Shown piece by piece: positions 20,715-60,508 of a stretch of DNA of 64,000 nucleotides. Source of the DNA: Eutreptiella sp. 'Long Island Sound 2002' (lineage: Eukaryota > Protista > Euglenida). How positions within the stretch are numbered: the stretch's first letter is position 1; the number at the start of each line of letters is the position of its first letter. A model generated the notes under the pieces. It saw nothing but the letters and a program-made list of their open reading frames with translations. It had not been told where the DNA came from and did not search any database. A program made the translations under genes and the position numbers. The DNA lies in NCBI GenBank assembly GCA_964036045.1, contig OZ038378.1, forward strand, positions 80,538,001-80,602,000, read 5' to 3'.

Positions 20715-23700
20715 CTAAGAAGGTAGAAACGGTGGGGTCCAGACACGTGGGTTTGCTCGGTGTTCCCTCATCACCTGCGGATGCTACCCTCGTAAGGTTA
20801 GCAACCATGGCGTGTGGCGATACTAAATTTCACATGTGTACCAATGCAGTTGTTTTGGGCAGGATGGGCCTGTTGGCGGCCCCAGTCCCTGTGAATTTTG
20901 TTGAACCGGAGTGTGGTCTTCCCCTTTGGGTGGTGGTCATTTCTTTACAATGGGGACGACAGCACCAAGTGCTAGTCAAGTCAGGAAAGGCAGTGGCAAG
21001 ACACCGCAAAGAGATTGTGGATGACACTGCTGGGTGGTGGCAAGATGTCTGCAGAGTCACTGAGTGGGATCCTCTGTCTCGGGGATGGCGGACAGAAAAA
21101 GTTCTGTGTCGATGCGTCCCGCAGGAAAGTGTCATGATGTTACATGTCTGGCTCAATTGGACCCCCCCTCAGTGGTCGTTGTAGTACTATGAAGTGCAAA
21201 TTGTATGCCCCTTTGATTCAGCTGGCCACAGCACCAAGTGAGTCTCGTTGTAGACAGTAAGCAGGGTTTAAAGGGTCTTCTGCACATGCCCTGCGCCGAA
21301 TGCTACACACAGTGATCACCCAATCCCTGGCGGTGCGAGGTGATGTTACGACGATGTTTTTGGATTTCTCTGGTGCCTTTGATGAAATCAACAGGCAAGC
21401 CATTCTGAGGGTTGCTGATATGTATCCGTTTTTACGTGGAGTTGTGCATGAAGTGGTTCATCACTACATGTCCTTCAGGCAATACGTGGTTTCTGCCCTG
21501 GCCCTATCAGAGTCGTATAGTCAAGTGGAGGGTGTCCTTCAAGGGGGGGGTTTAGATCCACTTTTTTACATACTTGCGGTTAATTTGATACATCTTGCCA
21601 TGCGTCAACTGGGGGTTGGGGTTCCGGTATGTGTTCCTCCCTCGGTAGAAATGATTGCTTCTCTGGGCTATGTAGACGACACAGTGGGGTTTTCTAGCAT
21701 AGAGGACAGACAGCGAGTGGCCGACCACCTTCCAGTTATCATTGACTGCGTCGGACAACGGAACAATAGCTCCAAAATGAACGTTCAAGTACTTCAGGTC
21801 AAGCAAGGCTCAGTCTGCAGTGTCAGCAAATCGGTCGTCTGGGACGACAAGCCAGTGTGGTCCACCAGTAGACACCAACACATAAAATTCCTGGGGGGAA
21901 ACGCTAATATTTTAGGAGGGTTCCCTACCATCAAAAATGTAATTACAAGGTGGTCTCGAACGGTCATCAGCAGGCTGCGAGGGTGGCCCGTGTCTGTGGG
22001 TGTGGCACACACTGTGATAGAAGGGCTTGTAGTCAACAGGCTTGTGTTTCGCTGCTGTGTGAATGTGCCAACGGACGTGCAAATTAGTTCAGTGACAGGG
22101 TCCATATGCAGGGTGTACAGACTGGTCTTTGGGTTGGCTCCCAATACTCCACGTGCCTGCATAGTTTCCATTCTAGGAAGAGCTGCCCCAGATCATGTCC
22201 TTTGGGTCACAGTCATCAATGAACTGTTTAAGTCTCTTAATGGGCCCAACGCCCTGCTGGCCCAATCTGCGTTGGCACACTGGTCGAACCCGTGTCTACA
22301 TCGCTTTGACAGCGACTCTCAGCGCATTCGGTCCAGGCTCCAAAGCCTGGGCATTCAGTTTCGCAAACTCGGGTCAGGTCAAGGGGCTAAGTGGTGTGTG
22401 AAACCGCCTCGGGGGGGTGCTTTCCCTACAGTTTGGTATGTTTTTGGTGATGCAAGCCTCAAGGATTGCTGGGGGGGAGCGGCAAAAGTTGTGGACAGTC
22501 ACGGCCATGTGTGGCTGGAGTACAGTGTCTCCCTCTCTGCTATTGGTCTCAGCACCAAGTTGGTAGAAGCCTCTGTTGTTGTCTCTGATGTTGTTGCCAT
22601 TGCCGAATTCGTCTCCTCCCATGGCGTGTGCTTAGAAGAAATCTGGGTGTGCTCTGACTGTTTGTCAGCTGTGCAGTCTCTGCAGTCCATAGACATGGCG
22701 GACAAAACTGCATCAATCATGGACAGGGTCGTCGCACACTTTGTCTTGACGCATCTTCCGGTTCAGATGGGTTGGGTGCCAGCACAGCACGATACGGAAC
22801 TTGATGACTGGATATCATCGTTCAACTCCGAAATGGACTCTGAAGCGAAAGCTGGTGCGCGCGGTGAGCGTCAGGAGGTCTCAGTTCTTGATGTATGGCT
22901 AGACAGAGATTCCATTCTTCGATTCCAAGGTGACAGATTGATTGTCGACCTCAAACGACATTTGCTTAGTCAATCTAATGATGCTCTCCTCAGCGTCTCT
23001 TCCTCTTGCTCACCCACCCCTCCGGAGAGATCATGGCGCATGGTGCTACCCGAATCGGTCTCAGGGCTCAAGTGCGGGGTGCAGCTGCAGTCATTAGGAA
23101 TAGAGCATTGGGGACTCATAAGGGCTTGGAGTGTGTATGCGTCAGCAGACCAGTGGGAGTGGCAGCACAGAGATGCGGAATGTTCACTGTGCTCCATGTG
23201 GTGCCACTCGGTAACACAACATAGATTCCACAAATGTTTATTTACTAAAGTGCGGGTTCTTGCTTGGTCTGGACATGTCTGCGAAATTTTGTGTGCTGCG
23301 GGCATTCCCCGTAACCGTATCGCTCTTCGCTGGGGGGGTGTTGAGATTTTGGAACATCCGGGTCTGTTCATTGTATGGTGTCATCCTGCGAAGGGAGCTG
23401 CCATATCTGATTCCTCGAAATCAGTGAAGCCTCTGTGGCCCATATGGCTGGGGTTAGGCCCAATTAGGGGTATTTCGCTGGTTCTCTCCAAATTGGGTGT
23501 CAGTCAACCACATATCCTGATTTATCAAGTCCTAGAGTGCGCGTATGCCATGGTACACGGTGGGTACGATACAGAAAATGTCCGGCTTCCGTGCCCTCTG
23601 TTTCATTCTCAGTGGACTGCAGGAATGAACTTAGGTGTGCTGCTGGGGTTTCAGACGCCAACTGCACATCTGGACAGTCACACTCCCTCCAACCTGCTCT

Positions 23701-24011
23701 GGGTTCTTTTCTCGTCTGTCAGGGGGAAAGGATACGTAGGGCATGTTCTGGTGAGTTGCAAGGGGACAGTTAAGATGACGGTCTGGCACTCGAAAGTCCC
23801 CTCCGTATGGATCTGCGAATGCCAAGGGAACCTACATTCTGTCGTCAGAGAGGCAATGAGGAGACGACTGGGGGGGGGAGGGTGTGTATTGGTGCCTCCT
23901 GGGTGTGCAATGGCCATGGGAGGGGCTTCGCCAGGATTCGGGACTCCAGCTGTGGCGTTTTATGGTGCGGACAGAGCAGTCGTGTCTGTCACTGGGGTGG
24001 GTTTTTTCTGA
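20681..24011 (+). pseudogene. LINE-A pol: RT + RNase H + CCHC + ~270-aa unknown tail; one frameshift (~21165) and one TAA (21258)
   Basis: Q*AGFKGSS, FLDFSGAFD, GVLQGGGLDP, YVDD, IKFLGG; RNase H VFGDAS...E...SDCLSAV...WVPAQH...NSEMD; CSLC...HRFHKC. Confidence 0.9.
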
Positions 24012-24455
24012 TGCCTCTCACTCCCGTGGTGTTCCCCCGCCTGTGCTGAAACCTGTTCTAGATGTGCAGATTTGGTAACCGTCTCTCTTCAGGGCGTGCG
24101 AACAGGTATCAGCCAGATTCTGGGAGGCACGGATCGACATCGGCTCCCAGCACGACTTATGGGTCATACCACTATGCCTATTCTGGGTCTAAGGGAACAA
24201 AGGAGGATCCATGGGTAAGCAGGGTGGCAAAGGCAAGGGGAAACACATGTACCAAGTCGACATAACACGTGCTTTCAGAAGGGAGTGGCATGGGTCGACA
24301 GTCACATCCTTGCTAAGTCACTTTCGTTCAGAGATTTGATTTGCTTTGTGTTCGGTGTGTAGGTTGTAGGGGCGGCTTGCTGTGGAACTAGGAAGGGGAC
24401 TGGTCCGAACCCAGACAAAGCGGATTTTTCAAATCAAATCAAATCAAATCAAATC

Positions 24456-24658
24456 ATGTATGTATGTATGTATGTATGTATGTATGTATGTATGTATGTA
24501 TGTATGTATGTATGTATGTATGTATGTATGTATGTATGTATGTATGTATGTATGTATGTATGTATGTATGTATGTATGTATGTATGTATGTATGTATGTA
24601 TGTATGTATGTATGTATGTATGTATGTATGTATGTATGTATGTATGTATGTATGTATG
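24456..24658. repeat. (ATGT)n microsatellite, about 50 units
   Basis: Direct reading of the sequence. Confidence 1.
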
Positions 24659-27369
24659 TTGCGGTGTTGCCGTGTTTTGGTGTCTAGTATGTTTTTTCGG
24701 GCGACCCCCTCCCCCCCCCCCCCCCCGGAGATTTGCAGCAAACACTCTGTGGACATGCATTCGGCCGTTGTGCTGTGGTGGTCGTGCTGTGTTTTCTTGC
24801 TTGGTCAGGATGTTGCTGTGGCTACTTCCTTGAAAACGGACCTTCGCTACGCATTTCGGAGATACCTCCCCCCCCTTGACGCCTTCCTTGACTGTTTCTT
24901 TATTGTTGGCGGCTTCATGGCGTGCAGGACATAGCACCCACCTACGCCGTGGGCCAGGCAGACATAGGAAAGATGGTCGTGTTGGAGGACGCGGAGTATT
25001 GGACCTGTGTGTGGGTGGAACAGGGGGGCCTCGATTGGATTATGGTCACCATGAGCAGGCTGGTGCGGCAGCGGTATAGGGGCCCTGCCTGCTACGGGGT
25101 CCTCCGGGACCATCTGCGGTTCTTGGGTCCCTTGCACCGGGCGTGCAGGTGCACGCCCGAGAACATCCCGCAGACACTAGCCGTGTTTGTAGATGTGATG
25201 AAGGAACCACGTGTCCCGGGGCAGGAGGTATGGCCCGTAGCCCTGAGCAACATGTGGCAGTCTGGGCAGGCGGCGGCCATGTGTAAGCTGTTGCGAGGGC
25301 ACGCGACGGCCCTTCCACGGGCGCCGGCAGCGCAGTCGTCCAGCAACCGGCCGGCGGCCTCCCTGGCAATGTTGCATGGTGGGCCACGGGCGTGGTGCTG
25401 GGTCATTGTGGCGCTGGAGCCGCACTCCTCTGCGCTGCGCATGTACGACCGCGGGGAGTCAACCGAGCATGGTCCGCCCTGCGGGCCTGGAGGCCCTGCA
25501 CCTCGGTGCCTTGAGCGGCGACCTTGGCACAGTGCTATACCTCCAGGGGACCGTCTTGGGATCAGCGGCGCTCCAGTTCCACAGGCACTACGGATGAAAT
25601 GCCTTCTGCCTGGTCATGGCTGAGACTATGGCGCCGTGGCTCGGGGCGTTTTCCACCTCCCGCTGGACGGTCGCATGTGATTGGGGGAAGTATGCCAATG
25701 CGTGGCGCCGGTGGGTGGAGCGGCAATTCCCTGCGGAGGGAATGTTGAACCTGCCACAGCTGCCCATTGTGCTTCCGGTCCGGCCAGCCTTCCCTGTGCT
25801 CGCAGTTGCGAGGGTGGTCCCGAAGGCAGCACCGCACCCTCCCCCCGAAAAGGGCCTCAGCTGAGCGTATGGCAACTGCACTAACATCAAGGCGACGCTG
25901 CAATATTTCGGGGGACAACTGGCCACGGAGCAGTGTGGGACAAGCGAGCTGAACGTCTGCCCCTGGTCTAAGCTGGAGGGGGCGGGCCAGTGCCCGTGGC
26001 GGGCCGGCCGACATTTGAAGGCCAGCTGCCTCCACCCCAGGGACCTCGTGGACCACTTGGCGAGGGACCATGGGTCGGACCCGACGCAGCGTGAGCAAGC
26101 GGAGGCCATGATCAAGGGCGTCATGCCTAGTGGACCGTCGGGGCCCTTGGCGGTGGCCAGGGCTGTCTCGTCGACGCTCATGCCGCCTACAGGAGTCCAG
26201 CCTTGAGGAGCGCAGGAGGCGTCATCATCAGCGGTGTTGAGAGGTGCTCATGGGGCTGCGGCGGTGTCTTTGACGGGCGGCAAGGGAGGAGGCTCAGGAG
26301 CTGCCCACAGTGAAGCCACACGGGCTTCCGCAGTGCCCTGTGGGGCGTGGCCGGCGGCAACCTCCTCCGGAGGTGAGCGGTAGGGGTCGGCGCCCGGTCG
26401 TGCCGAGGGATCGACGCACTCGGCGCCCAGTGCCGGGGCCGCCGGCCCTCCTTCTTCCGGCGAACCGGGCCCCGCTGATGATCCGGATCCGGCAGCGATG
26501 CCGTGAAGGGATCCCGCCCATGACGCCCGGAGTGCAGTGTCTTTGAACGTCCAAGGTTCGATGCGGGGTGACGGCGTGTCCACGGCCTCGGGCATGCTGG
26601 ACACTGAGGCGGTTGCAGCGGGCGTTTGAAAGGCAGAAGGTGCCATTCTGGGTCTCTTCCGGAAGACGGGCCTGCAGGACCCCCAGGGCGTGGTACATAT
26701 GGAGAATCATTGGAGTCTCCATGGGTACCATACGCGCCTCGGCGTCCATTCCCAGGCGGCGTCGGCGGCTGCGGTACGTGGCGGTCTCTTGATTGCCCTT
26801 CAAGCGGACGTGTTCGCTGCGGGGGAGGTTGGAGATGTGGTGACCATGGCCCTCGATGGGGTTACCGCAGGTGGGACGTTCACAGTCATCAATGTCCACT
26901 GCCTGGGCAGTGGCGGTGACTCCTCGGCGTCTAAGGCGTTTTTGTGGGCTGACGGGGCCATGTATGCGGCAGCCAAGAGCGCGGGAGGCACGAGGCTGGT
27001 GCTCATCGAGGGGGACTTCAACATATGACTGGAGTCCCCAGGACACCCCACCACGAAGCGGTTTGTGGCCCTATGGGAACAGTGTGGGTTTCAGAGGGCG
27101 GGACAAGCGGCAGAGGAAGACCATCAACGTATGCGTGCACGGCATAAGTGCACTCCTTCTCGCTCAACGCACCGCTGGTTCCGTGGGCAATGTGTGAGCG
27201 CCCGTACCCGGTGCCGGGGAGGTCTCCTGCGGCGCTAGGGTCTGACCACAGCCCCGTGGTCCTGCGCATCCCACTGGCAGTAGCTACCAAGGAGAGGATC
27301 ACACGGCTGGCTTACTCGCACGCTCAGGCCAGGCTGCACCACGGGGGGGCGGCCGGGAACGGTCGTTGT

Positions 27370-30238
27370 ATGCGACACCCCCCAGGCCCCTCCCCCCCTC
27401 GGTTTTGAAAGATAGTGGTGCCGGGGCGGCCAACAGCAAGTGTCCCTACAGAAAACTGTCCGGCGCCGAAGGCGCCAATTTTTTTTTTCATACTATGTGT
27501 TTATACTCAAAATGCTCAAATTTTTGTAGAGAATTCATATTTGGGCTATAGGAGGGCTGCAGGCCCTAATAGCAACCCTAGCCCTAACCCCAACCCTAAC
27601 CCTAATCCTAACTCTAGGCCTAACTCTAACCGTAGGGCTAATCAAGACTGAATATTGGGACCGAGCTGGTGGGGGAGGGAACATCAGCTATGACTGGTGA
27701 GGGACATCAAGAATGATTTACACATTGATGGCTCTTGACAAAGTGAAATCAGCCTGCAAGTGAACCCCATCACCACAAGGCCCACTTTGAAGGCTTTTTG
27801 GACTTCTAAGGGGCCAAAATGCCCCAAAATGGGCTCAAAATGGGCTCATGTCACCCGTTTGTGCACCCCAAATTGTCTAGGATGAGGTTTGGAAAAATGC
27901 GTTTTTGAGCCATTTTTGACCCATTTTTGGTCACAACACAGCCCACTTTCAAGGCATTTTGGGATTTTCGGAGGACCAAACTGGGCCGCCACAAGCTCAA
28001 AACGGTCCAAAAACACTTGTTTTAGCGTTGCACATGGTCTAGGACCAATTTTTGGAAAAGTCATCTTTTTGCCCCTACTGGACCCTGTTGAACCATTTGG
28101 GCACCCACCTTTTTGGGCTTGAGCTTGCAGCTTGCCGCAGCCTAGTGGGCCTAGGTATTGGGGTCTAGGCGTCCGTTTGGGTAATTCTGAGGGGTGGAAA
28201 CCAAAAAAAGTGGGGGGTTGTTGGTGGAGTAGGTGCCCTCGGAATCGCATTTTGAGCCATGTAGCCAAAGATATGGGGTGTTCTTGGTTCGTGGCTGTCG
28301 GCATTTGGAGCTTCTTGGGCCTTTTTGGGCCGTTTCCGAGACATATCATGGAGTTAGAGGGCTGCAAAGAGCTCGTTGACACGGGGAAGTCAAGCCGCAC
28401 GTGCAGTGTACCCGCCGTTTCCCTTCATTTGGCCGTTTTGAATGTGTTCCAGGGCTTTTTTAGTCTAAAATTGGCTATTTTTGGCCTTGAACTGCAGCTT
28501 TTGAGATTGAGGTCCGCGACTTGGGAATCCCGTTCCCGACCGCCACCGTTGAGTTTCTCGCTCAAACTTTGTGTGATTGTACTTCACACCCATAGGTATC
28601 ATCCACCGAAATTTCAGCCGAATTTGAAGCACCACGACAGAATTCTGATTTTTTACCCATTTCGCGCGTGCTGCTGCTTGCTTGCTTGCTGCTGCTGCTT
28701 GCTTGCTGCTGCTGTTGCTGCTAAACCTAGTAGGTCCACCCTAGACAATAAAAAGGGTTATAAAACCAAGACTGGTTCCACCAGCTCGGTGACCTTAACC
28801 CTAACCTTAACCCTGATCAAGACTGAATATTGGGACCGAGCTGGTGGGGGAGGGAGCATCAACTAAGAATGGTGAGGGACACCAATGAGTCACACATTGA
28901 AGGCCGTTGACAGAGTGGAATGAGCTTGCAAGTGATCCCCATCACCACAAGGCCCACTTTCAAGGCTTTTTTGGACTTCTGAGGTGCCAAATTCCCCCAA
29001 AATGGGCTCAAAATGGGCTCATTTCACCCGTTGGTGCACCCCAAATGGTCTAGGATGAGTTTTGGAAAAATGTGTTTTTGTCACATTTTTGACCCATTTT
29101 TAGTCCCAAAACAGCCCATTTTCAAGGCATTTTGGGATTTTTCGGAGGACCAAAATGGACCACCACAAGCTCAAAACGGTCCAAAAACACTTGTTTTAGC
29201 ATCACACATGGTGTAGGATCATTTTTGAAAAAAAAATTTTTTTGCCCCTATTGGACCTTGTTGACCCATTCGGGCACCCACCTGTTTGGGCTTGAGCTTG
29301 CAGCTTGCCGCAGCCTGCTGGGGCTATGTATGGGGGTCTAGGCGTTGGTTTGGGCAATTCTGAGGGGTGGAAACCACGAAAAGTGGGGGGTTGCGGGTGG
29401 ACTAGATGCCCTCGGAATCGCGTTTTGGACCATGTAGCCAAAGATATGGCCTGTTCTTGGTTTGTGGCCGTCGCCAGCCAATCTGCACAAAATTTGGGGC
29501 TTCTGGGGTCTTTTTGGGCTGTTTCAAGGACATATGGTGGAGTTAGAGGGCCGCAAAGGGCTCGTTGACACAAGACAGTCAAGCCGCACGTGGATTGTAC
29601 CCACCGTTTCCCTTTGCTTGGCCGGTTAGAATGGGTTCTAGGGCTTTTTTGGCCCAAAAATGGCTGTTTTGGCCCTAAGCTGCAGTTTTTGAAACTGAGG
29701 TCCGCCACTTGCGACAGCTTTTCCCGGCCGCCACCGTTGAGTTTCTGGCTCATACTTTGTAGGATTGTCCCTCACACCCATAGGTATCATCCACCAAAAT
29801 TTCAGCCAAATCCGAAGCACCACGACGGAATTCTGATTTTTCCCCATTTCGCGTGTGCTGCTGCTTGCTTGCTGCTTGCTTGCTGCTTGCTTGCTACTTG
29901 CTGCTTGCTACTAAACCTGGTAGGTCCACGCTAGACACTAAAAAGGGTTATATAACCAAGACTGGTTCCACCAGCTCGGTGACCCTAACCCTAACCCCCC
30001 CCCTCACCCCATCCGACGCCCCCCTGACCCCCGGCTAGACCCGCCCCCGGACCCCCTGGCAGGACCCCCCTCAGACCCCAGGTAGGACCCCCCCCGACCC
30101 CCAGCCAGATCCCCCCCCGATCCCCGGCTGGAGCCCCCTCCGACCCCCGGCTGGACCCCCCCCCAACCCCCGGCCGCCCCCCCCCCCCCAACTCCCCCCC
30201 CCCCAAGTTTTGACAGATAGCTGGGGGGTATGTCGCAT
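27370..30238. mobile_element. TIR-bounded non-coding insert with two ~1.18-kb tandem units delimited by telomere-like repeats
   Basis: Ends atgcgacaccccccag and ctggggggtatgtcgcat; units ~27640-28815 and ~28816-29995; CCCTAA-like tracts at 27575-27630, 28793-28815 and 29982-29998. Confidence 0.75.
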
Positions 30239-31452
30239 CAGGACCGGTTGTAGTCGCCCCCCCGTGGGCTGCACGCCATACGTCCGGACTCACGGGGGGT
30301 CCGCGAGGCGGCGGCGGCAGTGCTGCAGCGGGCCTGTTATGATACGGCGCTTCGGGAGTGGCGCTGGTTGGATCACGACACAGCCACCATGGGCTCCCTG
30401 GAGGTTCAGCCGGTCTTCAACGTGCCCTATGCCTTTCGTGACGAGGTGTCGCGAGTGACGGGGGTGCGCATGCCATCAGACATGGACCCGCAGTACCCGT
30501 ATGGACAAGCGGAGATGGAGGCGCCTCTGTCCCGGTCCTCACGGATCAGCAGGCCCTCAGGTGGCGAGCCCATGAGTTATGGAACCGGGACGCGGCGGCT
30601 GCAGGGCTCGCCTTCAGAGAAGCAACAGCACCTCCCGCTGTTCCACCCCAATTTGTCCCCCGCCACCAGGAAGGCCCTGCGCGATGCTTTGGACCAATAG
30701 CTTCAGTACCTTGACCAGCGCGTGGAAGAGCACAGGGGTGTCCGCACATGCAACCGGCGCAGGTTTATCAAGGACCACCGGGGCAAGAATATGGATTTAC
30801 AACTCCGGTGGACGGCGATCTGCGGGGCCATCAACATGGTCAGCTACGCTCTCTCCGGCTTATGGTCGGTGCGCGTCCAGTGAGCGTCCGGGAGTGGGAG
30901 AAAGTGCTGATGGAGGCCTCAGAGGTCATTGGGCAGGTCCAGAGGTACTAGGAGGCGCTGTATGCCAAGAGGCCTGTGAACCTACCGGCCTTTGAAAGGC
31001 TCGTCCCGGCCCACATCCCTCGGGGTGTGCCTGACGAGTGGAAGTCGGTAGAGGACTACACCCTACAGGACCTCAACGACGCTGGGAAGCAGGTCGTGGC
31101 GGACGACAAGGCGCCGGGGTCCAATAGAGTCATGGCGGCCCTCGTCGCGAAGCTGCCCTAGCCGCCGCAAGGGCTCCTAGTACACGCTTACCGGGCCATC
31201 CTTCGTGGTGCGGAAGTCCCGGAGTTGTGGCATGAGGCCGTCATCTGGCTGATGCCCGAGGGCACGACCACGGGGGTCTTGGATGTGTATAGCCCAATAG
31301 CGTTGGGACAACAAGACATGAGAATGTTAATGACCCCCCTCATTAGTTGGTTCATGGCAGTCTTGGCTGGTAAGGGACTTGTTGCAGGCTAGCAGTTCGG
31401 AGCCATACCAGGCTCAACGGCGGCAGCCCTGGTGTTTTTGGCATAGCGCAGA

Positions 31453-32826
31453 GTGCAGAGGGGGCAGGAGGAGAATCATGTCCTGGCCTTTGATGTCTTC
31501 AAGGCCTTTGAACCCGCCCCGCATTGGGCACTGGCTTTCCTCCTGCACCACCTGGGGGTCCCGGAGAAGCTTATAAAGCTTTTCCATACCCTTAGCTGCG
31601 CCTCCGCAGTGCGCAATGTCACAGCGCATGGTCCCACCGTGAGCATCCGCTTCCATCGAGGTTTGAGGCAAGGCAGCGCGGAAAGCGCCGTGCTCTACCT
31701 CCTCCTCCTCGAACCCCTCTTGCGGAGCCTTGCACGCAAAGCCCATCCGGATACCCGCCACGCTGTGCCGCCTCTGGTACAAGCATATTGTGACGACCTC
31801 TCGCTGATAGCGCACTCCTTACCGCAGCTCCTGGAGTATGCAGCGGCACTTGCGCAGTACCTCGGAGACATGGGCATGTCCCTCAATGTTGGGAAGAGTG
31901 GGTACGCCACTACCTCTTGCGTCCCCTCCATCATGGTGCACCTGAACCCCAACAACGCGGTAAATCCATGGGTACGTGTGGTGGCCAAGAGTACTGTGCC
32001 GTACCTGGGCCTCAGACTGGATCAGAAAGGAATGGCACCCATGAAGGACAAGCCTTTACTCCGCTGCAAAGGTCTCGTGGGCTGGTGCAAGAACACCTTG
32101 GGGCCGGCGTTAGTACCCCATGAGGTGATGGTAGCAGTGGTGGGTGGCTGTGTGCGGTACGCGGCGCCGTACCCGTCGGACACGGCGGAGCAGGTGGTGA
32201 GGTTGAATGCTGCCATCAAGACTGCGGCCTTGCAGCTTGAAAACCTGCCCAAAGACCTGTCCAACGTTGCGTCCCGGTATGGTAAAGGGCATAAATTGGC
32301 GCATATTCGGGTGCTGTGCCGTGACTCCGTGGTAATTACTTTGGCTCAGCTGACGCATCATCGCTCGGCTGTGATTAAAGATGAATGGAGAGCCCTGTGT
32401 GATGATCGGCACACACAGTACGGGGTGTGCAGTCAGTTCATGATTCCTTCCACGTCGTTCGCGTTGCATGCATCAGACACGTGGGTCGACCGAGTGCTCA
32501 GAGCGATGGGGACGTCTGGAGTAGGACTCCTCATGCCGTCATCAGTGTATTTGTGCGTGCATGCCCATCTGCCGCAAGTGCAATGGGCTGGACGGCGATG
32601 GGCGACCCGGTCCTACACCTTCAAGGGTAGAGACATCTGTGTGATCTGTGCGCCCTGCACGGACGCGGCGGTTAGCTCCCTTACCGATCCGGCGAATGAC
32701 CTCCTACACGCGCGGCTTCCATGCCATGAGCCCGGAAACTGGGCCGTACAAGTTCGGGAGTGTCACGAGGACGATCTGCACCTTCCCAATGCGGGAGTTG
32801 GGCCGACTCAGCTGGACCATGTGTAG
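31453..32826 (+). pseudogene. LINE-B reverse transcriptase core
   Basis: FDVFKAF, RQGSAES, YCDD and YLG motifs. Confidence 0.9.
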
Positions 32827-33865
32827 CTACCGGATCTCCAAGCGGTCTTCCAGTCCCGGATGCCCAGTGCCCCGAGTCATCGTCTGCTTCACCCGGTGCG
32901 ACACAAAAAAGCCACCAAGCGCTCAAGGCAGTCCGCTACGGGCGATCTGTATGTAGTGGGAGGGTATAGGGACAGCGACTGGAACCCGGATTGTCCAGGA
33001 CCTTCCATGCTGTTCGTTCCGCTGGCCGCCCTGATGTTCTTATTGGGGGATGTCTTCGACGGTTATCAGTAACAGGACGATACGGCGTCCATCCAGCTTC
33101 TTACGCCCTTTGCCGGGCGCGGTCTTAGCCCTCCGCCTCTGTTGGTTCTACGCGGGAGGTTGGCGTTTGACAGGGCATGCAAGGCGGTGTGGGGACGAGA
33201 GGAGTGGGCCATAGTCCTACTACCGCCGTCAATCCCTGCCCGTGATGCTGGTGAGAGTGCGGGTATGGAGGTGGTCAGGGTGGACAAAGTACCACATGAT
33301 CCGCACTTTGCTATCACTTCGCTCCGCGAAGGTGGGGTGGTGGAGAAGGGATGGTGGTGGTGTATCAGCCGCTCCGCTCCACGACCATATGGGGAGCGAA
33401 ATATACCACAACCCTGAACGCCATCAAGTCCCACTGCCGATGTGACGTACACTGGGGGCCACATGGAGTGTACCCTTTGTACCCGTATGAAAAGTAGTTT
33501 TGTTCACCATAAATGGTTTTATGAAATTTGAACGGATTTTGCTCTTGCTAGGATACCCATGGGCCATTTTCGTTCAAAAGTGGGGGGCTTGGGTCAACAC
33601 CTTTGAGGTGAGCTTTTTTTGTGGACCGGGGTTTTTTGGGAAAATTGCCATTTTTGCCAGTTTTTGAAAATTATGAAAACATCCTCCCCTGTTCATACTT
33701 CGGTTCATAATTCAATTCATAATTCAAAACTCGTTTTATGAACGCGCCGATCGTTTTATGAATGCGTTTTATGAACGCTTTTTATGAACAGATGCACAAG
33801 CACACAAAAACCGCTCAATTTTCAATTTGTCTTGTACTTGCTTATCCTTGCTTGTCCTTGCTTGT

Positions 33866-42965: not shown

Positions 42966-42968
42966 GTT

Positions 42969-43000
42969 ATACATACATACATACATACATACTTACATAC
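42969..43000. repeat. Short (CATA)n tract
   Basis: acatacatacatacatacatacttacatac. Confidence 0.95.
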
Positions 43001-48230: not shown

Positions 48231-48592
48231 ATCTGCAGGGTTGTAGGTAGGATCAGGGACACCATGGGACAGTTTTTGTTTTCGTTTTTTTTGCCTTTTT
48301 TTCGCTTTGACTTTGTCCCCTTTGACTTTGTCCCCGGATTGTGCAAGTGCGCGGCGAGCATTGCCAATTTGTGACCCTTGAGAGCAACGTGGAGAATAGG
48401 TGGTACCAACAAACCGGCACTTTGAAGGCATTGGCAGAGTGGTGCATTCATTGTGCTCCCTCTGTAGTGCCCACTGTACCAAGGGATCCCTATCCCTGCA
48501 TGCCCACTGCCCCTACTAATGATAAGATGGCATCATATTGTGGCCCGAACAGTGTGAGTTGCCGGATTTGCCAAGAGAACGTGCCACATTGA

Positions 48593-49369: not shown

Positions 49370-49799
49370 CGCCCCTTCCATCACCTTCCTCAACCCCACC
49401 ACTCCAATCACCCATGTTTTGAGGCCCCAAGCAGGAGAACCCCACGACGGGCACGCGGCGCGTTGGTGCACACGATGTACAGCCGGTGTGCGGGCATAGT
49501 ACGTGCACACGTTGTGGGCACGCAAAAATGACTACCGCGATGAGGGGGTCATTTTAAGCCATATATGTTGGGGTCGGGTGGCCGCCTCCCCTTCAGCCGG
49601 CCCCAAACCCCCCCCAGACCTAGCCCTCCCCCCCTCCCCCCCCGAGTCAGGCCGGCAGCAGCCGCCACCTGCCCTGTGCGCCCCCTGGGGTCAGAGGTGC
49701 AGCCTGTGAGGGGCAGACGCACCACTGCCACACCAAGTGTCCCCCCCCCCCCGCCGCGCCCATGCTTGCTCAACAGGTAATGGAAGACAACGTTAAAGG

Positions 49800-52700
49800 G
49801 GAGCGGGTGCCCCGACGGTGCCCCGCGCAGGTGACCTCCCCCTCTCCCAGGGTGGCGACCCCGGAGGGGCCTTAGGGCCTGGTGGCACCCGGGCAGCACA
49901 GCACGAGGGGGGGCTCAGGCTCAACGGCCCCCGGGCTTGGCCCTAGCGGCCAGCCCCACCTCCAGCACGCGCACCGAGCGGAGGGGCCTTAGGGCCCACG
50001 GGGCAACGCGATACATACCATCGCCCCCTCAGGCATCTCGACGCCTAGCCACAGCACCACACAGAAGTAGGCCCTTTAGGGGGTTGTTGAGCCAGCCCCA
50101 GCCGGTTCGCCGCCCCGGGCTACACACACACGCCCGCACAGCATAGCGCATGCGCGCGAACGCGGCGACCACGCGCGGCTGAGCGAACAAGGGAACCATC
50201 CCCCCCACGCGGAGCGACGCGGGCAGGCAGACCCGGGTGCCAACCAGATGCGCTGGTAGCGGGTTAGCCCCCATCCACTGTGTGTGGGTTGGCGCCCTGC
50301 ACCCCACCCAACAGCGGCATGCATGTCACGGGCAGTGACACGACATGCCGCACCCTTTCGCCTCACTCTCGGCCGCGGAGCAGCAGGAGCAGCTCCGCCC
50401 AGCTGCTGTATTCCCCATCTCGGGCGCTGTCTGGAACGCGGCGCAAGCGACAGTGGAGATCACAGCGCGGCACCACGAGGCGAAGATCAACGTCATGGGG
50501 GTACCGGTACCGCGCAGCCCCACGCTGGCGTCCGTTGCAGTGACGTGGTGTGCGCTGGCCAGCCCGTCGAAGCCTCCGAGACTGCAGCCGTACGACCTGA
50601 GCGTCCTGGAAGAGGGCCTGTCGGGGTATTCGTGGCGCACATACCAGACGTGCATGGAGGAGCTGATGGAGTACGCGTTGCGGGACGCCGCGCCCCGACG
50701 GTCTGACCTGGTGCACGCAGCAGCGAGGCACATGGAGGCGTGGGGCAGCGACCAGATCCGCGTCCTGGCCTTCGAGGACCTCCTCCTGCTGCTGGGGAAC
50801 GTCACTACGGTACAGCCGGTCACACTGCGGGTACCGCTTCTGCACTGGCTGGCCTCCTGGACTGCATCGCGACACGGGCTGAAGCTGGCGTGGGAGACCC
50901 CCACATTCACAACCTCCTCCGCAGGTCTCAAGCTTCCCAGCCCGTGCCCCTTGACTCAGCGGGAATGGCAGAATGAGCTTCGGGAGCGAGAGAAGGATGG
51001 GAGCCTGGCCATGCCCGACGCTCTGACGCGCTTCCAATCGATGGAGAGGGGCCACACTCAGCCACAGGGGCCCGGCCAGAGCGACACCCCGCAGTAGCTG
51101 TAAATTCTGCAGGGGCCCGCACCTGCCGACCCCGAGAACATGCTACGTGAGCTGGATGCGCTTGGTTGTGTCCCAGGGCCACAAGTTGGGCAGGTCGCCG
51201 CCGCGGTAGCGGCCCTCGCCCGACCGTACGGTACCTCAGCCCGCGTGCTGCAGAACTTGGGCCTGGCATCAGTCCCAGCGGCCCTGGTCACAGCCGTCAA
51301 GGCAGTGTGGTCCTCGTGCCCAGCGTCCACCCAAGCGCGCATGACGGCCGACCTCCAGCCCCTCCTGGACCACGTTCAGCAACGCCACGGCTCAGCGGTT
51401 GATGGGGCAGGGTGCGACGCACACTCGAAACCGTGGACAAGACCATCACGGGCGCGGCGTCTCTGGGTTATACCAGGTGGTCACAGGCAGGGCTGGCTGT
51501 GGCCTCCACCGACGACCTGCCCATCTCCGCCTTCCAGCACATTGGCAACGTGAGCGACGAGCAGGAGTTCCGTAAGGGCATTTTGGGGCTCGTACGGGGC
51601 CTAGACCGCATCGCGCAGCACGACGTGCTGCTAGAGGCCACCAAGAGGGCCCTCGCTGTCTCTGAGGGGGACAGCTTCCAGTGGTTTCTAGGGAAAGGCG
51701 CTAAGCCTGGGGCTTCCCCCCCAGCAGCGGCTCAGGCCCCGCACCCACCCTCAACCCGTCCGACAGACGCGACCCCCCAGCGACCGCCGCCAGCCGCTCC
51801 GCGACCGTGGACTGACCAGCCGCTGCCCGCCAGCGAAGCAGGACCTGACCGTGCGCCGCCCACCAGGGCGGTGCGCATTTCTGGCCTCCGCGATCTGCGA
51901 GCCCCAGAGGTGTCTGTCGGCCTCAGTGCTCTCTTCCAGACGCCCGTCTACCTGACGCCCCCCGACCAGCAGAGGGGATACGGGTTCGCGGTCATACCGG
52001 CGGCCGTGTTCGAGAACCTCTTCTCGGACTACCCATCCCGCTGGTACGAGTCTGACGGCATGTGGGGGGTTACGCTCGACAGTCGCAGGCAATCCAACGG
52101 GGAAGCCTTCCACGCGGACCTCACAGCTCTCACAATGCCCCCTCCCCTGCGCCCAGGCCCCTCGCCGGAGCAGGACCCGAAACGCAGGCGGATCGACGAG
52201 GGACATCGCCCACCGACATCTTGGGCCCGCGCTGCACCGGGCCTCCCAGGGCCACCACCGCCCTTGGCCCCTGAACGGCCCCCCCGCACGCGCCGCACGT
52301 GGCCCTGCACACCCGCCCAGACGCAAATGGGGCCCCATCCATGCAGATGGCCCAGGGGCAGCCCTGGCCGACCCGCCGCAGGAAGTGACTACTGGTACCG
52401 CTCACCCTCCCCCCTAATTGCACCCCAGATCATGGGGTCCTCCGCGTGGCCCACGCCCTTGCTAAGACCCACCCCAAGCCGACGACACGACGCCCTATCA
52501 CCCTACCCGCTGCCCCGGCGTCCGAACCCCCCAGCGCCCTGCACTCGTCCAGCATCTGCACCGTCTGCGGCACTTGGGCCTTGTCCGCGCCCGGATCCGT
52601 AGCCTCCATGGCCTGCCCGGAATGCGGCTCCCCGGCGTCACTGCAGGCCTTCGCACTTCAGCCCCCCATGCCAGAAGTCCCCAGCGACCCCGTACCAGCG

Positions 52701-55700
52701 GCTCTCAGCTAGACGCCCCCCGAAGCCCGTAACTCGGTCCTGGAGGTGACACAGGTCTGGATACGCGCGGTCAGCCAACTGCCCCCCTTGGCGGTCGCCA
52801 CCCCCCCAGTCCGGTGTGCGGACATGTGGGTCTCATTCTGGGATGAGGCCCCTCCCATGCGGACGGAGCCGCTGTCGCCGCCCTCGTACGCCCGGCGTGG
52901 CCCGCAAGAGCCGTGGCTACTACGGTCCGCCGCCCCCGACATGCACGTGCTTTCGTCCGCCTGCGCCACGTGTGGCAGGATGCGGGCGTCAGTGGCGGCT
53001 GTGGGCGCGCTCCTCGACACTGCCCCCCAGCCTCATCTCTTCTGCGTCGCGCAGGCAGCACATCACCCCCTGCTCACAGCCAGCGTGGCGGAAAGGGCGC
53101 ACCTGTGGGACGGCTGCCGCCACTTCCCAGGCGGTGTCGCCCTGTGTGGGTGGCGCTGGGCGAACTGCACAGGACTGCCTCCACCAGCATCCGTCCTACC
53201 TGTGCCCTCGTGGGCCTCGCAACTGCCAGCGCCCAACGCGCCCCAAGCCAACCCTGAACCCGTCAGCTTTTGGGTGCTGGGCAACAACTTGGCTGGTGCG
53301 GCTCATCAACGTGACATAGTGGGCCCACTGATAGAGGCCGTGGACCCCACGTACGTGCTGCTGCTGGAGACATGGGACCCGGCTGCAGCTCAGGCGCTGG
53401 TGCCCCCGACGTACGCCCTGATCCAGGGTACAGTGACGGGACAGCGACGCGGCCTGGCGGTGGGGATCCGACTGGCGGACATCCTCCCTATGCACCCGCC
53501 CGCGGTGGTCTACGACTCACGAGATTGGCTGGGGGTCCTGTGCCACGCCCGACACGTAGGACGGGTGCTCCTGCTGGACGCACACTTCGACCCCCACGCA
53601 CCACACGCACAGTGGCGCGCCACAATGGACAGCCTCCTCACCTGCGCACACCACGTCCGAGCAACCGTGACGATCATTCAAGGCGACCTGAACTCCGACG
53701 ACGATGGCGCAACGCCATTGGCTGTCACACTCCGACGGGACCCGCGACTGCAGCGCTACGTACGGGTGCTGCCCCCGCGCACGCCAACCAACATCGTCAG
53801 CATCCAAGGGCGCATCCGCGCCACCGCCATTGACCACCTCTTCGTCAACGGCCCCGTCCGCAGCAGCGAACACCACCTGGTCCCCACAGCCAGTTCCCAC
53901 CTGGCGGTGATGGCGGATATAACCCTCACCAGCACTCGCTATGCCCCACTGGAAGCATCTGCGCTGGCGCCTTGCCCCACCAGCGGTTATGGACGCCGTT
54001 CGGGCGCTCACCAGCGCCGTCTGGGGCCACGTGGCCGTCACCACAGCCCCGCCGGACATGTTCATCGCTGCCCTGCACCACCTGGCCCGCAAGCGCCTGC
54101 CAGCGCCCATGCCAGACAGCCAGTACGTCCGGCGCTTGGCGCACCACCCACCGCCCTACGACGACGGCTTCCTCCAAGCGCGGGCGGAGGAGCATCGACA
54201 GCGGGCACAAGATCTTCACCGCGACCGCGTACGGCTGGCATTGCGCTCGGTGCAGATCGGGCGCGAGACCCGCCGGGCCTTGTGCCTGCCCACCGTCCCG
54301 CTCAGGCCGTACACAGGCATACTCCCGTCCCCAGGAGCAGTCCTTTCCAGCAGGGAAGAGCGACTGGCAGAAGTCACGGCCCAGGTCTCATACGCCACCC
54401 GGTACAGACACCTCCACATCAACAAGGAGCGCTTCGCCATCCAGTCAGTCCCGCCCCTGCAGCAGCGCACGCCGTGGTTTGCAGCCGAACTCCCGATGGA
54501 CCAGCTGCACCATGCCCTCCGGCGCGGTCGGGACCCCGATGCCAGCAACGACCGGGAGGCCCTCCTGGCTGAGCTGAACGAGCGGCCGCTCTATGGCACG
54601 CCAGACGTGGCCCTGCAGCTGGAACGACGGACGTCACCTGCCACGGCCTTGGACAATGTACCAGGTACAATCACCCACACCAAGTCCGGGGGCACCGTAG
54701 CGGGAGTTCGTCACATGCACTGCAGCTTCCAGCGAAACGTCGACTCGGTGGCCAGAGATACCATCCGCTATCGGTCGTACAAGGGCAAGGGCCCGCTGCA
54801 CCTGGCAGGATCGCATCGGCCGGTGGCAGTGGAATCCAACCTCATGCGCTCCTACTGGGGGGTCGGGCGCACGAGGCTCAACTACACCCTGGAGCTGTCC
54901 GGGGCCCTGACGCCCGACCTCCTTGCGTACCGCACGGCAGTTTCAGCCACCATGATGGTCCTCTCTACGCGAGCTTCGGTGCTGCGGGCGCTGGAGCTCT
55001 CTAGAGTATGCGCTGACGCTGAATGGGACGAATCAGATGCCTACCTGCGCAACCAGAGGGAAGATGATGAGGAGCTGCTGCGTCTACTGCCAGGGGTACG
55101 GAACTTCGGTTCCTAGTGTGACGCGTTCTACTCGCGTCAGCGGATCCACTCAGTGACCGACGAGGGGCTGGCCCCGAGGTACAGCCCTGGCGAGGGCAGG
55201 GAGCAAGGGGACTCCTTTGCAGGGGAGGGTTTCCAGGCCCTGCAGTGCGTCCTGAACACCTGCATGCTCACGGGGGCGTCGCTGTACGTCCCCGACGTTC
55301 TGCGGCCGGGACACTCGCTACCGATGGAGCACCAGGCGTACTCGGACGACCGGCGGGTCCAATCAGACACTATGACGCGGGTGGTGGCGCTGGTTGCGCG
55401 GTGCATGGACGTGTCTATGGCCGCCGGCAGGGTGGTTCACCCCTCCAAGTTGGCCTTCCACTGTGTCCGCCTAGACGCTGCAGGATCGCGCCTGATAGAA
55501 TGCGAGGTAGGGCTGGCGGGCCTGATGACGACCAAGGAGACGCCAGTGGTGTTGCGGGTACCGCTTTTGGCGGAGCTCCCGCTGACGGCGGCCGTGGGGC
55601 GGTTCCTCCGGGCACTCCCGGGGGCCTCGGCGTCAGCTACGCGTCAACGACTGCCCCCCTTGCTGCGGCTCCGGGCTATGCTGGCGTATGGAGTCTCCAG

Positions 55701-58062
55701 TGGAGACAACCTGCTGCGGGGCCTCCTGGTGCCCGGCCGTTGCCTGGCTGCCCATCAGGTGCAGGTGCACAAACCCTATCGCCGCGCGTTCTGCCTGCCC
55801 AAATGGACCCCGGTGGAGTTCCTAACGTTGGCGCTCGAGGAAGGGGGCCCTGGGGCGCCGAGCCTCCGCGACCGCTGCGAATTGCTGCTTCTGCAGTCGT
55901 ACCTCCAGTCGTCATGGTCGCGCAACGCCGCAGCAGCGTCAGCCGTGCACTATCGGGTCAGCACGCCACCCATCCGCGGCTGGGAACACGAGGGGGTCGC
56001 CCTTCAATGCGCCCTGCGCGCCCGAGGGGTCAACCTGACCGCCCTGCCGTCTGGCGTAGCGGAAACCAAGGCTCTAGAATTCGGGTCCTTGGCGGACCTG
56101 GGCGGAATCCACAGTGTTCACGTGTCCTACGACGGGGCGTACGTGGAAGGAGTGACGGCTTGGGCCGTGGTGCTGTGGCATGACGCTTTGGGGTACTTCT
56201 ACGGGTGCGGTCGCGCACTGCGGACCGCGGGCAGCGACGCCACAGTGGCCGAATGGATGGGACGGTTGGAAGCTATGCATGCCTTGCAGCGCTGGGGAGG
56301 GACAGTTCACTACGTCGCTGATTCGACGGCCACCCTGGCCTCGACGTACGACCGTGCCCCCGCGGCGGGCACGTTGGTGGAACCATGGTACCGAGCGCTT
56401 GCGCCGCTACGCGTCTCCAGCCCCTCCGTGGACGTGTGGGTCCCCTCCTTGCCCCGGGCCCAGCATCCGCCGTCGCAGCTCCACAGCCTGCACCGCGCAG
56501 CACACGACCTCGCCAAGCGGGCAGCGCAACGCCCCAGCAGCGCTTCAGTGCCGTGGCCCCACCTGCTGGCTGGAAGGGTCGTGGCGCACTGGCACGACGC
56601 GCTGATCATCAACGTCAAGGAAGCTGCATAGGAGCTGTACCAGACTGGCACCCGGCTGGCACTATTCCGGAGTTAGCCTGCAGCCCTCGTACACCCGTGG
56701 CACCCCACGGTGCTGCGGGCACTGTGCACTGACAACCTCCCCCTGCTGCAGTTGCAGCGCATGACCCTGCTGCGCCTGCTTGAGGTTCGCCGGCCGCCGC
56801 AGGGGTATGGCGCATCCGACTGCCCTTTCTGTCACGGCCCGACTCTGGATCTGAGCGCCCACCTGGCGGGGGGGTGCAGGGCCTATTACCTGATGCGCGT
56901 TGACATGTTCCAGACCCTCCTGTACCACCTGGTGCGGGTGACCACACCGCGGCATGCCCGCAGCCACCGGGGACTGGCGGTCTGCGACGCCACTGGGACC
57001 CAGTACACTATCCTGGACCCTGTGCAGCGCACGGCAGCGCTGGAGCCCCCCGGCGTGGACATCAGCCCGAGCGGCCACGCCCAAGCGAACCCGGGGCGAC
57101 CAGCGCTCGGGCACGACGCCGACAACACCGTGCAGAATGTTCTGGCGGCGGCGGCCCACCCCGATCACACCCTGCAGTGGGCCCTGGGGCGTTCTGGCCT
57201 GGAGCCGTCGGCGAATGGAGCGGGGCCACGGCTGTCCTTCGGGGACGAAGTACTACTCCAATATGCATTGCGGGCACTGGACCGATGGGTGCTGCGCGTC
57301 CGCTATGGGTTACAGCAGCCCCTTCCGGCGCTAAGCGGGGTACTGGGGCGACCGGCCGCAATGGTGTATATGTGTATTCACGAGTTAGATATAGAATTCG
57401 CCCTCAGCCAGCCCACGGAAGCGGCAAGCGCCGCCCGTGTGTATCTCATAGACACTGACCATGAGTGGGCGGTGCGCCACACTCATGCGGACCATCTGCA
57501 CACGACAAGCCTAGCGCCGCGGAGGTGCGTCCTCTGGGACCCACGGACACCATGGACGAATTAAAGAGTGAAGCCCGACCAGTGCCCGTGCCTGCGACCA
57601 AGGAGGGGACGGGGAGGAAGCAGGGTGGACGCGCGGGCCCTGCTGGGAGGGGGGCTGGGCGCCACGGCCAGCGCCGAGGGCGAGCCTCCGCGCCCACCCC
57701 ACCCTCAGGGCAGAACGCACCGGGGCGCCCCAGTCCGTGGGCGCCGGCACGAAACCAAGGGGCGCGCCACGAACACACCACCGATGGGGTGGGGGGGAGA
57801 GCAAGGAGGCCAGAGCGATGACACGCAACACAGGTACGGGCGGGCAAGGCGCCGCGCGCAGCGCGGTGGACCCGGACGTGCCTTACACGTAGGAAGAGAA
57901 ACGGCGAGAGCGCGCCGGAGCGACACGCGCGAGCCCCAGTGCGCGTGGTTCATGCGAATTACAGCGTGTCACGCAGCCCCTGCCGCCCGTGGCCTGCAGC
58001 CTAGGGGGCACTGGCCTAGCGCCGGGACATAGCGGCAGCAACCAACCAACCAACCAACCAAC
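49800..58062 (+). mobile_element. LINE-C: near-complete RRM-ZnF-APE-RT-RNase H-CCHC element with (CCAA)n tail
   Basis: RNP1 RGYGFAV; CTVC/CPEC; APE LLETW, QGDLN, AIDHLF, SSH; RT HRPVAVES, EQGDS, YSDD; RNase H SYDGA, AEW, ADS; CPFC...H...C; (ccaa)n at 58038-58062. The 5' boundary is approximate. Confidence 0.9.
52446..57564 (+). pseudogene. LINE-C pol, broken by TAG at 52710, 55114 and 56629 and one frameshift near 53940
   Basis: ORFs 52446/52746 share a frame; ORFs 53941/55153/56710 share a frame. Confidence 0.9.
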
Positions 58063-58873
58063 CCCCCTTCTCCCCCCACCCTGAGATTGGCTGCAAAGTG
58101 GGAGGGAGTCGGTGTATGGCCCGTTGCTACGTCCCCCCCGTGCTCCCTCCCCCTCCTCCCCGTCCCCTTTCCCCTCGTCCACCACCACTTCCCCCTCCCC
58201 CTCATCCTTGACCCCCCCCTCAGGCTAGCCTGTACCCGCCCCTTGGCTCCTCTCCCTCTCTCTTCTCTCCCTCTTCTATCTCTTATTTTTCTTCTTCTCC
58301 TTCTTCTCCTTTTTCCGCCTATCCCAGGACTTTTCGCTTGCCTCCTCGGATGGGCGTGCGGGCAGTGGAGGGGGCGGAGGTGGACTTGGTGTTGGCGGAG
58401 GTCTTGGAGCGGCTGCTACTGCCAGTCGCTGCTCCAGTTGTGGACAAACGCACATGCAAAAAAACAATTTTTTTTTTAATTTTTCATCCCTCGAGTTAAT
58501 TTCTTGAACTTAATATTCTCGACCAAAAATTAAATTAATATATTAAGTACTAATGGAAGCCACTGTTAATATTATTGTGGAAAAATTAAGCAACTCGCGG
58601 CAAATATTAATCGGAACGCACAAGCAAGCGTGCACAAGCAAAACACACCAGGGCTGCATTGTTGGCTTTGAACATGTCGGCCAACATCTTTTGCGATGCC
58701 AAGGCGTCCATGGCAAGGAGAAAACAAAGCTGGCGGTGGGGAACCAAGGGTGGAGGGCGGCGGGCTACCGGTGGCCATGAACTTGGCCGTGGTGCCTGGG
58801 GCGGTATGGGGGGTCCCCTAGTTGTGCAACGGGAGGTCAAATTTTAAAAACCACCACTCCCACACTTGCGAAC

Positions 58874-60508
58874 CTACCTCCCCTTCCGTTCTAGTTGGGT
58901 TGCCCCCGGCATCCCCCCCCCCCCCCCCGGGCGCGAGTGGTCATTGTATGCGCGCTTAGAGATGGCGTTGAGGCTCTCAACAACATCCGCGCACACGGCA
59001 CCCAACCCAACCCCCAAGCGGCGTGCATTGACCACGGCCTCGGTGACATCCTCCTCCAAATAGAGGACGTAGCTTGATTGGCACGCCTCCTTGCAACAAT
59101 GTGCTTGGTAGGCGCGTGCCACCTCGGCCACACGTAGGTCCCCGCGGGGCCGCTTGTCCGTGTACAACTCCCGGAGGAGGTCACGCATGGCCACGACGGC
59201 TTGCCATTCACCATCCTCCGGGATGTAGTCCAACAACGGACCAAGTTCGTCCCACAAGAGGAACAATGCATCTGCCTCCTCCCCGTCGGGTGCCGTCGAC
59301 GCACCCAACTTCACACTCGTGCGCGCCTGGTAGAGGACCCGTTGCAGGGCGTTGACATTCTCCTTGGGGAGGTCCACGAGGCGTGTCTCGATGAACGCCA
59401 CTTGGACCCGGCCTATGGCTATGCAACAATGGAGGATGCGTGGGAAGACCACGCACCGGTCAACCACAATGCGTGGACCCCCTATGCATCCTCCATTTTG
59501 CAAGCTACGGCCGGTCTTCTTGTAGCGGAGGCGGGCTGCCTCCTCACAGTCCAAGGTGCACCGGGTCGCCACATTGACCAATGCCGCCGCAACCTTGCCC
59601 CACACCCCCATATTCTAAATTGAGCCCACCAAGGGCGAGGTTGACACACCGATGAGGCGCCGCACCAAGGGTTGGTCTCCCCCGATGACCAACCCGCTTG
59701 GCACGCAGCGCGACACCGAGTAGAACTTCTTGCAGTCTTTTATGAACTGCAATATCTACAAAAAAGAAACGGATTAATATTTGCATTGATTTCTTGAGAT
59801 TACTATTAAGTTAATTTTTCAGGTGGCGTTAATCTTAACCAAAATCTAGAAATTGATCTCCGAAAATTAACGCAAAAAAAGCAAAAAAAAAACAAACGAC
59901 CAATTGGCCACAAACCTTCAAGTTGTCGGCCCATATCGTTGCAAGTGCCGCCATGTCCTTGTCCCTGCACACGGCCATCCCTATCACCCACTAGTACGCA
60001 GGTGTGCGGCCCCGTGCGCCGTGGTTCAGGAGCCCAACGGAGAGTTGGGTCGAACTACCACCGGCGCACGGGTACGCATCCCCACACACCATGAAGGTCA
60101 GGGGCCTCGTGCAATCAATAGTGTCCACTAGCGATGGACGTGATTGGACGTACCGGGCCTATGAGGGTAGCAGCCAACAACGCCCACTCGCCGGGGGATC
60201 GGGGATATTGCTTCACCGCCTCCTTCTGCTTGTCGCAAGTATGGGAGGGGTAGGTAGCCAACGTCCGTGGCCTCGGACCATCCGGCCCGGGCCAAGGGAG
60301 ATGAAGCCGCCCACTCACCAAGGAGTTGGGCGACCAAAGGGTCCCGCAAACTCTTGGCCCCACTCAAACGCACGAGCGTCATGTTAAGCTCGGTAAGGGT
60401 GTCCCGAGAGAAGGCCATAACAAGATCTATACCATGTAACATGGTGGTGTGGAGTGGGGGGGAATGCGGGCAACTGGAGGGGGGGGTGTCCAAGACAGCC
60501 ACCAACAC
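58874..60508 (-). pseudogene. RAG1/Transib-like DDE transposase relic with GT-AG intron 59756-59915
   Basis: D1 FMVCGDA (60080), D2 GGDQPLVRRLIG (59677), ILHCCIAIG, E in GLGAVCADVVESLNAISKRAYNDHSR (58978); in-frame splice ...WADNLK|ILQFIKDC...; TAG at 59993 and 59617. Confidence 0.75.

Follow-up and report, generated by a model that had tools for sequence, protein, structure and literature searches.

Premature stops in the repeats of a euglenid genome: accelerated C>T decay at CWG and CG sites as a probable trace of 5-methylcytosine

What has broken the reading frames of the retroelements in a stretch of DNA from Eutreptiella sp. 'Long Island Sound 2002'? The stretch analysed here, called the window, comprises 64,000 nucleotides (assembly GCA_964036045.1, contig OZ038378.1, positions 80,538,001 to 80,602,000) and lies at 80.5 Mb on contig 1 of a 2.28-Gb assembly. 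It is repeat-rich nuclear DNA, 57% GC, with abundant tandem repeats and decayed retroelement frames. A preliminary description of the window observed that nearly all the in-frame stops it had traced were TAG or TAA, and proposed a CpA>TpA hypermutation of repeats resembling the repeat-induced point mutation (RIP) of fungi. We suggest a different answer, as follows. Transposon copies and other duplicated DNA decay by ordinary, clock-like point mutation, with C>T about threefold faster at the symmetric sites CG and CWG (W is A or T; that is, CAG/CTG) than at other cytosines. The cause would be the spontaneous deamination of 5-methylcytosine (5mC) maintained on both strands at CWG and CG, and a CHG-type (CWG-preferring; H is A, C or T) methylation activity on the repeats studied would be implied. 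Judging from the mutation spectrum, we regard clock-like 5mC deamination at symmetric CWG and CG sites as the best reading, and as probably the right one.

The evidence that carries this reading comes mainly from LINE-A, a young long interspersed nuclear element (LINE) present in the genome in 40 or more copies that are 94-98% identical. The segment from 19761 to 25500 of the window was aligned with its copies, 30 of which were fetched with flanks, giving 4317 columns. Only singleton departures from the majority base were counted (947 events), so the polarity of the changes is safe. The C>T rate per site is 0.244 at CWG (111/455), with CAG and CTG at 0.26 each, and 0.224 at CG (67/299). The latter is 2.8 times the rate at CHH, where 110 of 1382 sites are affected (0.080). 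Cytosines in CAA, CAC and CAT (CAH) change at a rate of 0.069, and the outer C of CCG at 0.059 (4/68). The excess of CWG over CHH corresponds to an odds ratio of 3.1 (p = 4e-16), that of CAG over CAH to 3.6 (p = 3e-9), and CCG differs from CWG with p = 8e-4.

The two strands behave alike. On the sense strand, C>T is found at 0.225 of CAG and 0.20 of CTG sites, and the corresponding G>A rates are 0.288 and 0.262. Flanking bases are without effect: the CWG rate stays between 0.22 and 0.28 for each base at -1 or +3, and CCWGG (7/26, 0.27) does not stand apart from other CWG (104/429, 0.24). Therefore, the target is not that of a Dcm-like enzyme, and a CCWGG specificity is ruled out. The share of CWG changes is homogeneous across copies (p = 0.16) and correlates with the other mutations of each copy (rho 0.52). 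Among the 30 copies, individual copies show no preference for one strand (p = 0.13), and same-type changes do not cluster, adjacent pairs numbering 169 where 164 are expected. What was observed directly is the context, with its strand symmetry and its indifference to flanks, together with the sparing of the outer C of CCG and the even distribution among copies. An equal, threefold excess at CG and CWG that spares the outer C of CCG is what is expected of the deamination of maintained 5mC. The same alignment holds a separate context effect: T>C singletons are about 1.5-fold commoner after C (132/554 columns) than elsewhere (243/1545 columns; p = 2e-4).

The LINE-A pattern recurs in the window in DNA that is not a LINE. 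In a non-coding 1.2-kb tandem duplication, unpolarised C/T differences affect 14/44 CWG sites (0.32) and 16/56 CG sites (0.29), against 25/319 at CHH (0.078; CWG vs CHH, p = 3e-5) and 1/15 at CCG (0.07). The duplication is an independent, in-window replicate. A drift from TG to TA had also been noted in the satellites, and this stands weakly: in a 47-bp satellite, whose units are not independent of each other, C>T is found at 27/247 CWG and 21/356 CHH sites (0.109 and 0.059; p = 0.03).

How do the stops themselves relate to this spectrum? All 15 positions named in the preliminary description are indeed stops, 12 TAG and three TAA, 13 of them on the plus strand. The two on the minus strand are TAGs that begin at 59617 and 59993 and read CTA on the plus strand. 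The possible TGA near 14519 was not confirmed, the codon there being GAT. Ancestral residues were taken from homologous proteins, found with the two longest ORF pieces as queries, with X set at each stop and with an unbiased tblastn in addition, or from sister copies. For the old retroelement that we call element B, 119 homologous proteins align across the stops; for the GC-rich repeat called element C there are six (P0121-P0126). These two elements were examined through their stops only. Eleven stops were polarised, namely ten of those listed and one further stop at 56674; 51095, 51101, 52710, 59617 and 59993 were left out. An origin of the stops from Gln or Trp codons, as had been suggested, applies to 8 of the 11, which arose by C>T or G>A, and fails for the other three, which are transversions. 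Assuming that each ancestral Q was CAG, six of the 11 lie in a CWG context (CAG>TAG or CTGG>CTAG). The TAA at 57562 is probably the natural end of the element C frame, because it coincides with the end of a homologue.

Under 5mC deamination, CAG>TAG, and CTGG>CTAG as read on the other strand, would be the stop-creating products of the CG and CWG decay, and for that reason TAG stops would come from Gln and Trp codons. Stops expose only this part of the signal, hence its resemblance to CpA>TpA. We have not used the stop tally as main evidence, since the models that it should distinguish barely differ. The 30 copies of LINE-A open reading frame (ORF) 2 hold 29 new independent stops, 15 TAG, 11 TGA and three TAA. 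The rates measured in LINE-A itself predict shares of 0.40, 0.35 and 0.25, respectively, and a context-free model gives nearly identical ones. Moreover, CpG decays as fast as CWG and 11 of these 29 stops are TGA, so a TAG/TAA tally is weak evidence when taken alone. Another frame of element C contains four TGA and neither TAG nor TAA; tracing frames through TAG and TAA is therefore partly a matter of ascertainment. At the level of codons, LINE-A ORF2 does show the context, with CAG>TAG at 7 of 18 codons and CAA>TAA at 1 of 19 (p = 0.019). Two supporting claims of the preliminary description are not confirmed by these counts. CGA>TGA, said to be rare, is seen at three of the seven CGA codons of ORF2, and CpG, said to stay abundant, has an observed/expected ratio of 0.71 in the window, 0.59 in the LINE and 0.30-0.37 in satellites. 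The coordinates of the elements and stops are collected in Table 1.

Table 1. Positions of the repeats, stop codons and methyltransferase paralogues discussed in the text (window coordinates, or contig and Mb for genes elsewhere in the assembly).
Feature	Position	Strand	Basis or ancestral state
LINE-A ORF2 (reverse transcriptase), young LINE	21261..24008	+	RVT_1 match
TAA private to the window copy of LINE-A	21258..21260	+	TAT in 25/30 copies; T>A transversion, no C>T event
Non-coding 1.2-kb tandem duplication, 86% identical	27621..29996 (27621-28806 vs 28796-29996)	.	self-BLAST
Element B, old decayed retroelement (reverse transcriptase)	30269..33473	+	RVT_1; seven premature stops
TAG in element B	30698		ancestral Q
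TAG in element B	30949		ancestral W, preceding C
TAG in element B	31159		ancestral E
TAG in element B	31390		ancestral W, preceding C
TAG in element B	31444		ancestral Q
TAG in element B	32824		ancestral W, preceding G
TAA in element B	33070		ancestral Q
Element C, GC-rich repeat with long TGA-free frame	53625..57561	+	stops 55114, 56629, 56674
TAG in element C	55114		ancestral W, preceding C
TAG in element C	56629		ancestral Q
TAG in element C	56674		ancestral Y
47-bp satellite, 21 units, rich in CAG/CTG	1158..2176	.	Tandem Repeats Finder
TAG, in frame just upstream of ORF 58874-59611	59615..59617	-	sequence context, ORF list
TAG, in another frame than ORF 58874-59611	59991..59993	-	sequence context
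DNMT-chromo/PHD paralogues, four, 47-56% identity	L033 C5:14.45 Mb; L035 C9:66.31 Mb; L036 C23:36.73 Mb; C18:13.915 Mb		

RIP changes CpA to TpA whatever the next base, comes in strand-coordinated bursts in individual duplicates and leaves AT-rich products; it goes with hosts that pass through a premeiotic dikaryotic phase and possess a RID/Masc1-type (DNMT4) gene. A defence of this kind, which would detect duplicated DNA and riddle it with CpA>TpA, would account for the eight polarised stops in which C>T or G>A has altered a Gln or Trp codon, and DNMT4, a family related to fungal RID, has been assigned to Euglena gracilis (PMC7463849; PMC9998398). The spectrum, however, contradicts it in context. 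CpA outside CAG is at background, CAH being no higher than CHH, and CTG is raised as much as CAG. It is contradicted in tempo as well: neither bursts nor strand-coordinated runs were seen in single LINE copies, as the tests of homogeneity, strand bias and adjacency given above indicate, and dozens of copies at 94-98% identity coexist. Taking TpA/ApT > 0.89 together with (CpA+TpG)/(ApC+GpT) < 1.03 as the RIP thresholds, both values are reached in just 3 of 127 1-kb windows. The LINE and elements B and C have TpA/ApT of 0.60-0.74 and (CpA+TpG)/(ApC+GpT) of 1.22-1.32, and the repeats are 52-67% GC. Finally, the host does not fit. The E. gracilis spliced-leader 24-mer, which is a published primer (PMC5654406), occurs in 3309 exact copies in the assembly, and its reversed control in none; by its sequence the host is a euglenid (Discoba), neither a fungus nor a plant. 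We therefore give a RIP-like process very little credence. The preliminary description had also offered the fallback that a genome which is not fungal might methylate DNA outside CpG, and this part fits a symmetric CWG excess that equals the CpG excess.

Could the same spectrum arise with no 5mC at all? CWG and CG might be favoured by a deaminase with sequence specificity, or by polymerases or repair that act unevenly at CAG/CTG. A spectrum reveals context and not chemistry, and the T>C excess after C is a second context effect that lacks an explanation. Against such a bias, the CWG rate equals that of CG, which is published as heavily methylated in E. gracilis, and the strand symmetry and the sparing of the outer C of CCG match known maintained CHG methylation. 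In addition, LINE-A has no excess of T>C at TWG or TG, and hence no indication of an artefact of biased repair; repair that restores CWG or CG predicts precisely such changes and was rejected. On balance, we consider a mutational bias unrelated to 5mC unlikely. The singletons of a LINE do include errors of retrotransposition, and APOBEC-like editing of retroelement cDNA, or reverse-transcriptase errors at insertion, could in principle be their source. Sense-strand C>T and G>A are equally raised in LINE-A, so the changes are not due to cDNA editing; per-copy polarity is absent, and the pattern recurs in the tandem duplication. This source is hardly credible.

Miscalls deserve a similar scrutiny, since motif-specific errors at modified bases are possible in long-read assemblies and could fall systematically on modified CWG sites in assembly or polishing. 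The published 2.37-Gb E. gracilis assembly was made from PacBio Sequel reads with Illumina polishing (PMC11252322). Proteins predicted from other assemblies have Q or W at the TAGs of elements B and C, so these TAGs are real differences between copies, and an artefact of this sort, even if present, would itself indicate modification at CWG. We regard it as very unlikely to explain the data. A variant genetic code that reads TAG and TAA as Gln would suit the long TGA-free frames that are interrupted by TAG and TAA only, and four of the stops do align to Q. But others align to W (four), E and Y; 21258 is a Tyr codon in sister copies; the majority state of LINE-A ORF2 has no in-frame TAG or TAA; and its copies gain TGA stops too. 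These alignments to W, E and Y rule the variant code out, and we attach next to no probability to it.

Several points weigh against 5mC deamination at CWG and CG and have to be set beside the evidence for it. We infer 5mC at CWG from mutations alone, and the strong statistics come from one LINE family and one 1.2-kb duplication. In three small families that bear DNA methyltransferase (DNMT) sequences (L038-L042, L044-L053 and L054-L058), CWG (8/795) and CHH (20/2755) do not differ significantly, with 160 events in all, too few for a decision. The dinucleotides CA and TG are over-represented in the window (1.28 and 1.26), and CWG has an observed/expected ratio of about 1.1 in the young LINE and in element C; it follows that any long-term depletion of CWG is modest. 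Of the domains that accompany methyltransferases of the plant type, an exon-by-exon, and thus insensitive, search of the genome found one BAH match, which is not beside any match to a C5-methyltransferase, and zero matches to DNMT1-RFD.

Which enzyme might maintain 5mC at CWG? The genome has at least 55 places that match PF00145, the C5-methyltransferase family. Several of the genes are full-length and intronless; their nearest solved relatives are M.HhaI and HaeIII, and they match TIGR00675, the model of the bacterial 'dcm' superfamily. One low-copy intronless family of this bacterial, M.HhaI-like type has an N-terminal catalytic domain, after which come a weak chromo-like match (E = 1e-3, below the Pfam cut-off) and PHD fingers. 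It comprises the paralogues of Table 1, of which the copy on contig C18 is broken by a TAG and a frame break. For the DNMT-chromo-PHD protein, the ESM Atlas offered nothing more specific than generic methyltransferase clusters, with scores of 0.83-0.86. We suggest the low-copy bacterial-type C5-methyltransferases fused to chromo-like and PHD domains as candidate CWG writers. It is tempting to go further and to suppose that euglenid repeats carry symmetric CWG methylation as dense as that of CpG, that its writer is not a plant-type chromomethylase, and that CHG-type methylation arose independently outside the green lineage. This extended proposal is tentative, and we think it possible rather than probable. 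The DNMTs assigned to E. gracilis are DNMT1, DNMT2, DNMT4 and DNMT5 (PMC7463849), and its DNMT1 branches among chlorophytes (PMC12344493).

Methyltransferase sequences also occur in multi-copy form. A further set of loci, L037-L060, consists of multi-copy open frames of 340-520 amino acids in which the match to the C5-methyltransferase model is confined to its N-terminal half (positions 2-170 of 324), and 21 of these 24 loci fall in four repeat families with 2-9 sampled copies each. Transposon-borne methyltransferases have been described in E. gracilis (bioRxiv 10.64898/2026.05.21.726589). A full-length bacterial-type C5-methyltransferase was found on a small unplaced contig as well (C1090, L034), which could be a contaminant or an unplaced repeat.

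As to the repeats of the window, at least 40 genomic copies are listed for each of elements B and C, at 75-87% and 83-97% identity, respectively. No Pfam family was found in element C, and a Pfam search of 16 further ORF pieces from elements B and C and the 58.9-62-kb region gave only RVT_1. On contig C20, between 17.8 and 19.1 Mb, there are at least 17 copies of element C in the same orientation, about 83% identical to the window copy (window 53.5-56.6 kb), with spacings that are mostly about 45-75 kb and extend to about 175 kb. Their arrangement resembles a large tandem array, with element C as part of its long units. The LINE-A copy of the window has perfect microsatellites on either side, (TATG)26/(TACA)25 at 16257-16462 and (ATGT)51 at 24456-24659. 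An interstitial telomere-like (AACCCT)n tract, at 27563-27635, marks the left edge of the tandem duplication of 1.2 kb.

Deamination of 5mC at CWG and CG, if correctly deduced from the mutations, predicts plant-like CAG/CTG methylation beside the CG methylation that is already published: in E. gracilis, CG methylation is described as 'almost the default state' (bioRxiv 10.64898/2026.05.21.726589). We found no description of non-CG methylation, CWG included, in Euglena in the searchable literature. A nanopore protocol for E. gracilis used the 5mCG_5hmCG basecalling model (PMC12455990), to which CWG methylation is invisible. Should the prediction be true, the reading of a 'heavily CpG-methylated' Euglena epigenome would change, and this layer of transposon control would be older or more often reinvented than supposed, or would have arrived with the green-algal plastid donor. 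For the annotation of the assembly, the TAG-rich broken frames are products of ordinary decay, reflecting neither a variant code nor a RIP-like defence.

The best-known cases of non-CG methylation in a fixed symmetric context are those of plants, in which chromomethylases write the mark. The plant CHG methylase CMT3/ZMET2 intrinsically favours CWG over CCG (PMC9256654). The euglenid decay resembles what that activity leaves behind in its symmetric CAG/CTG context, in the sparing of the outer C of CCG, in a size similar to that of the CG effect and in its occurrence in transposons and repeats. It differs in that the host is a euglenid, in which CWG methylation is a prediction, and in that no BAH-chromo-methyltransferase gene was detected by the insensitive exon-by-exon search. 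The architecture of the candidate enzymes is also unlike that of plant CMTs, whose chromodomain is embedded in a DNMT1-type catalytic domain; in the euglenid proteins an M.HhaI-like domain is N-terminal and the readers come after it. The CG part of the spectrum, with its 2.8-fold excess over CHH and its CpG observed/expected ratios of 0.3-0.7, matches the CpG decay published for E. gracilis, but CpG decay by itself leaves the equal CAG/CTG excess unexplained. As in bacterial Dcm methylation (CCWGG), the effect falls on the inner cytosine of a CWG core, and unlike Dcm there is no need for C at -1 or G at +3 in the euglenid LINE. Ascomycete RIP (by RID; Masc1 in methylation induced premeiotically) shares with the decay described here the C>T changes in repeated DNA that create TAG and TAA stops. 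In the euglenid, in contrast, the context is CWG and CG rather than CpA, the changes are clock-like and strand-symmetric, and the repeats are not AT-rich, stay outside the range of the RIP indices and persist in many near-identical copies.

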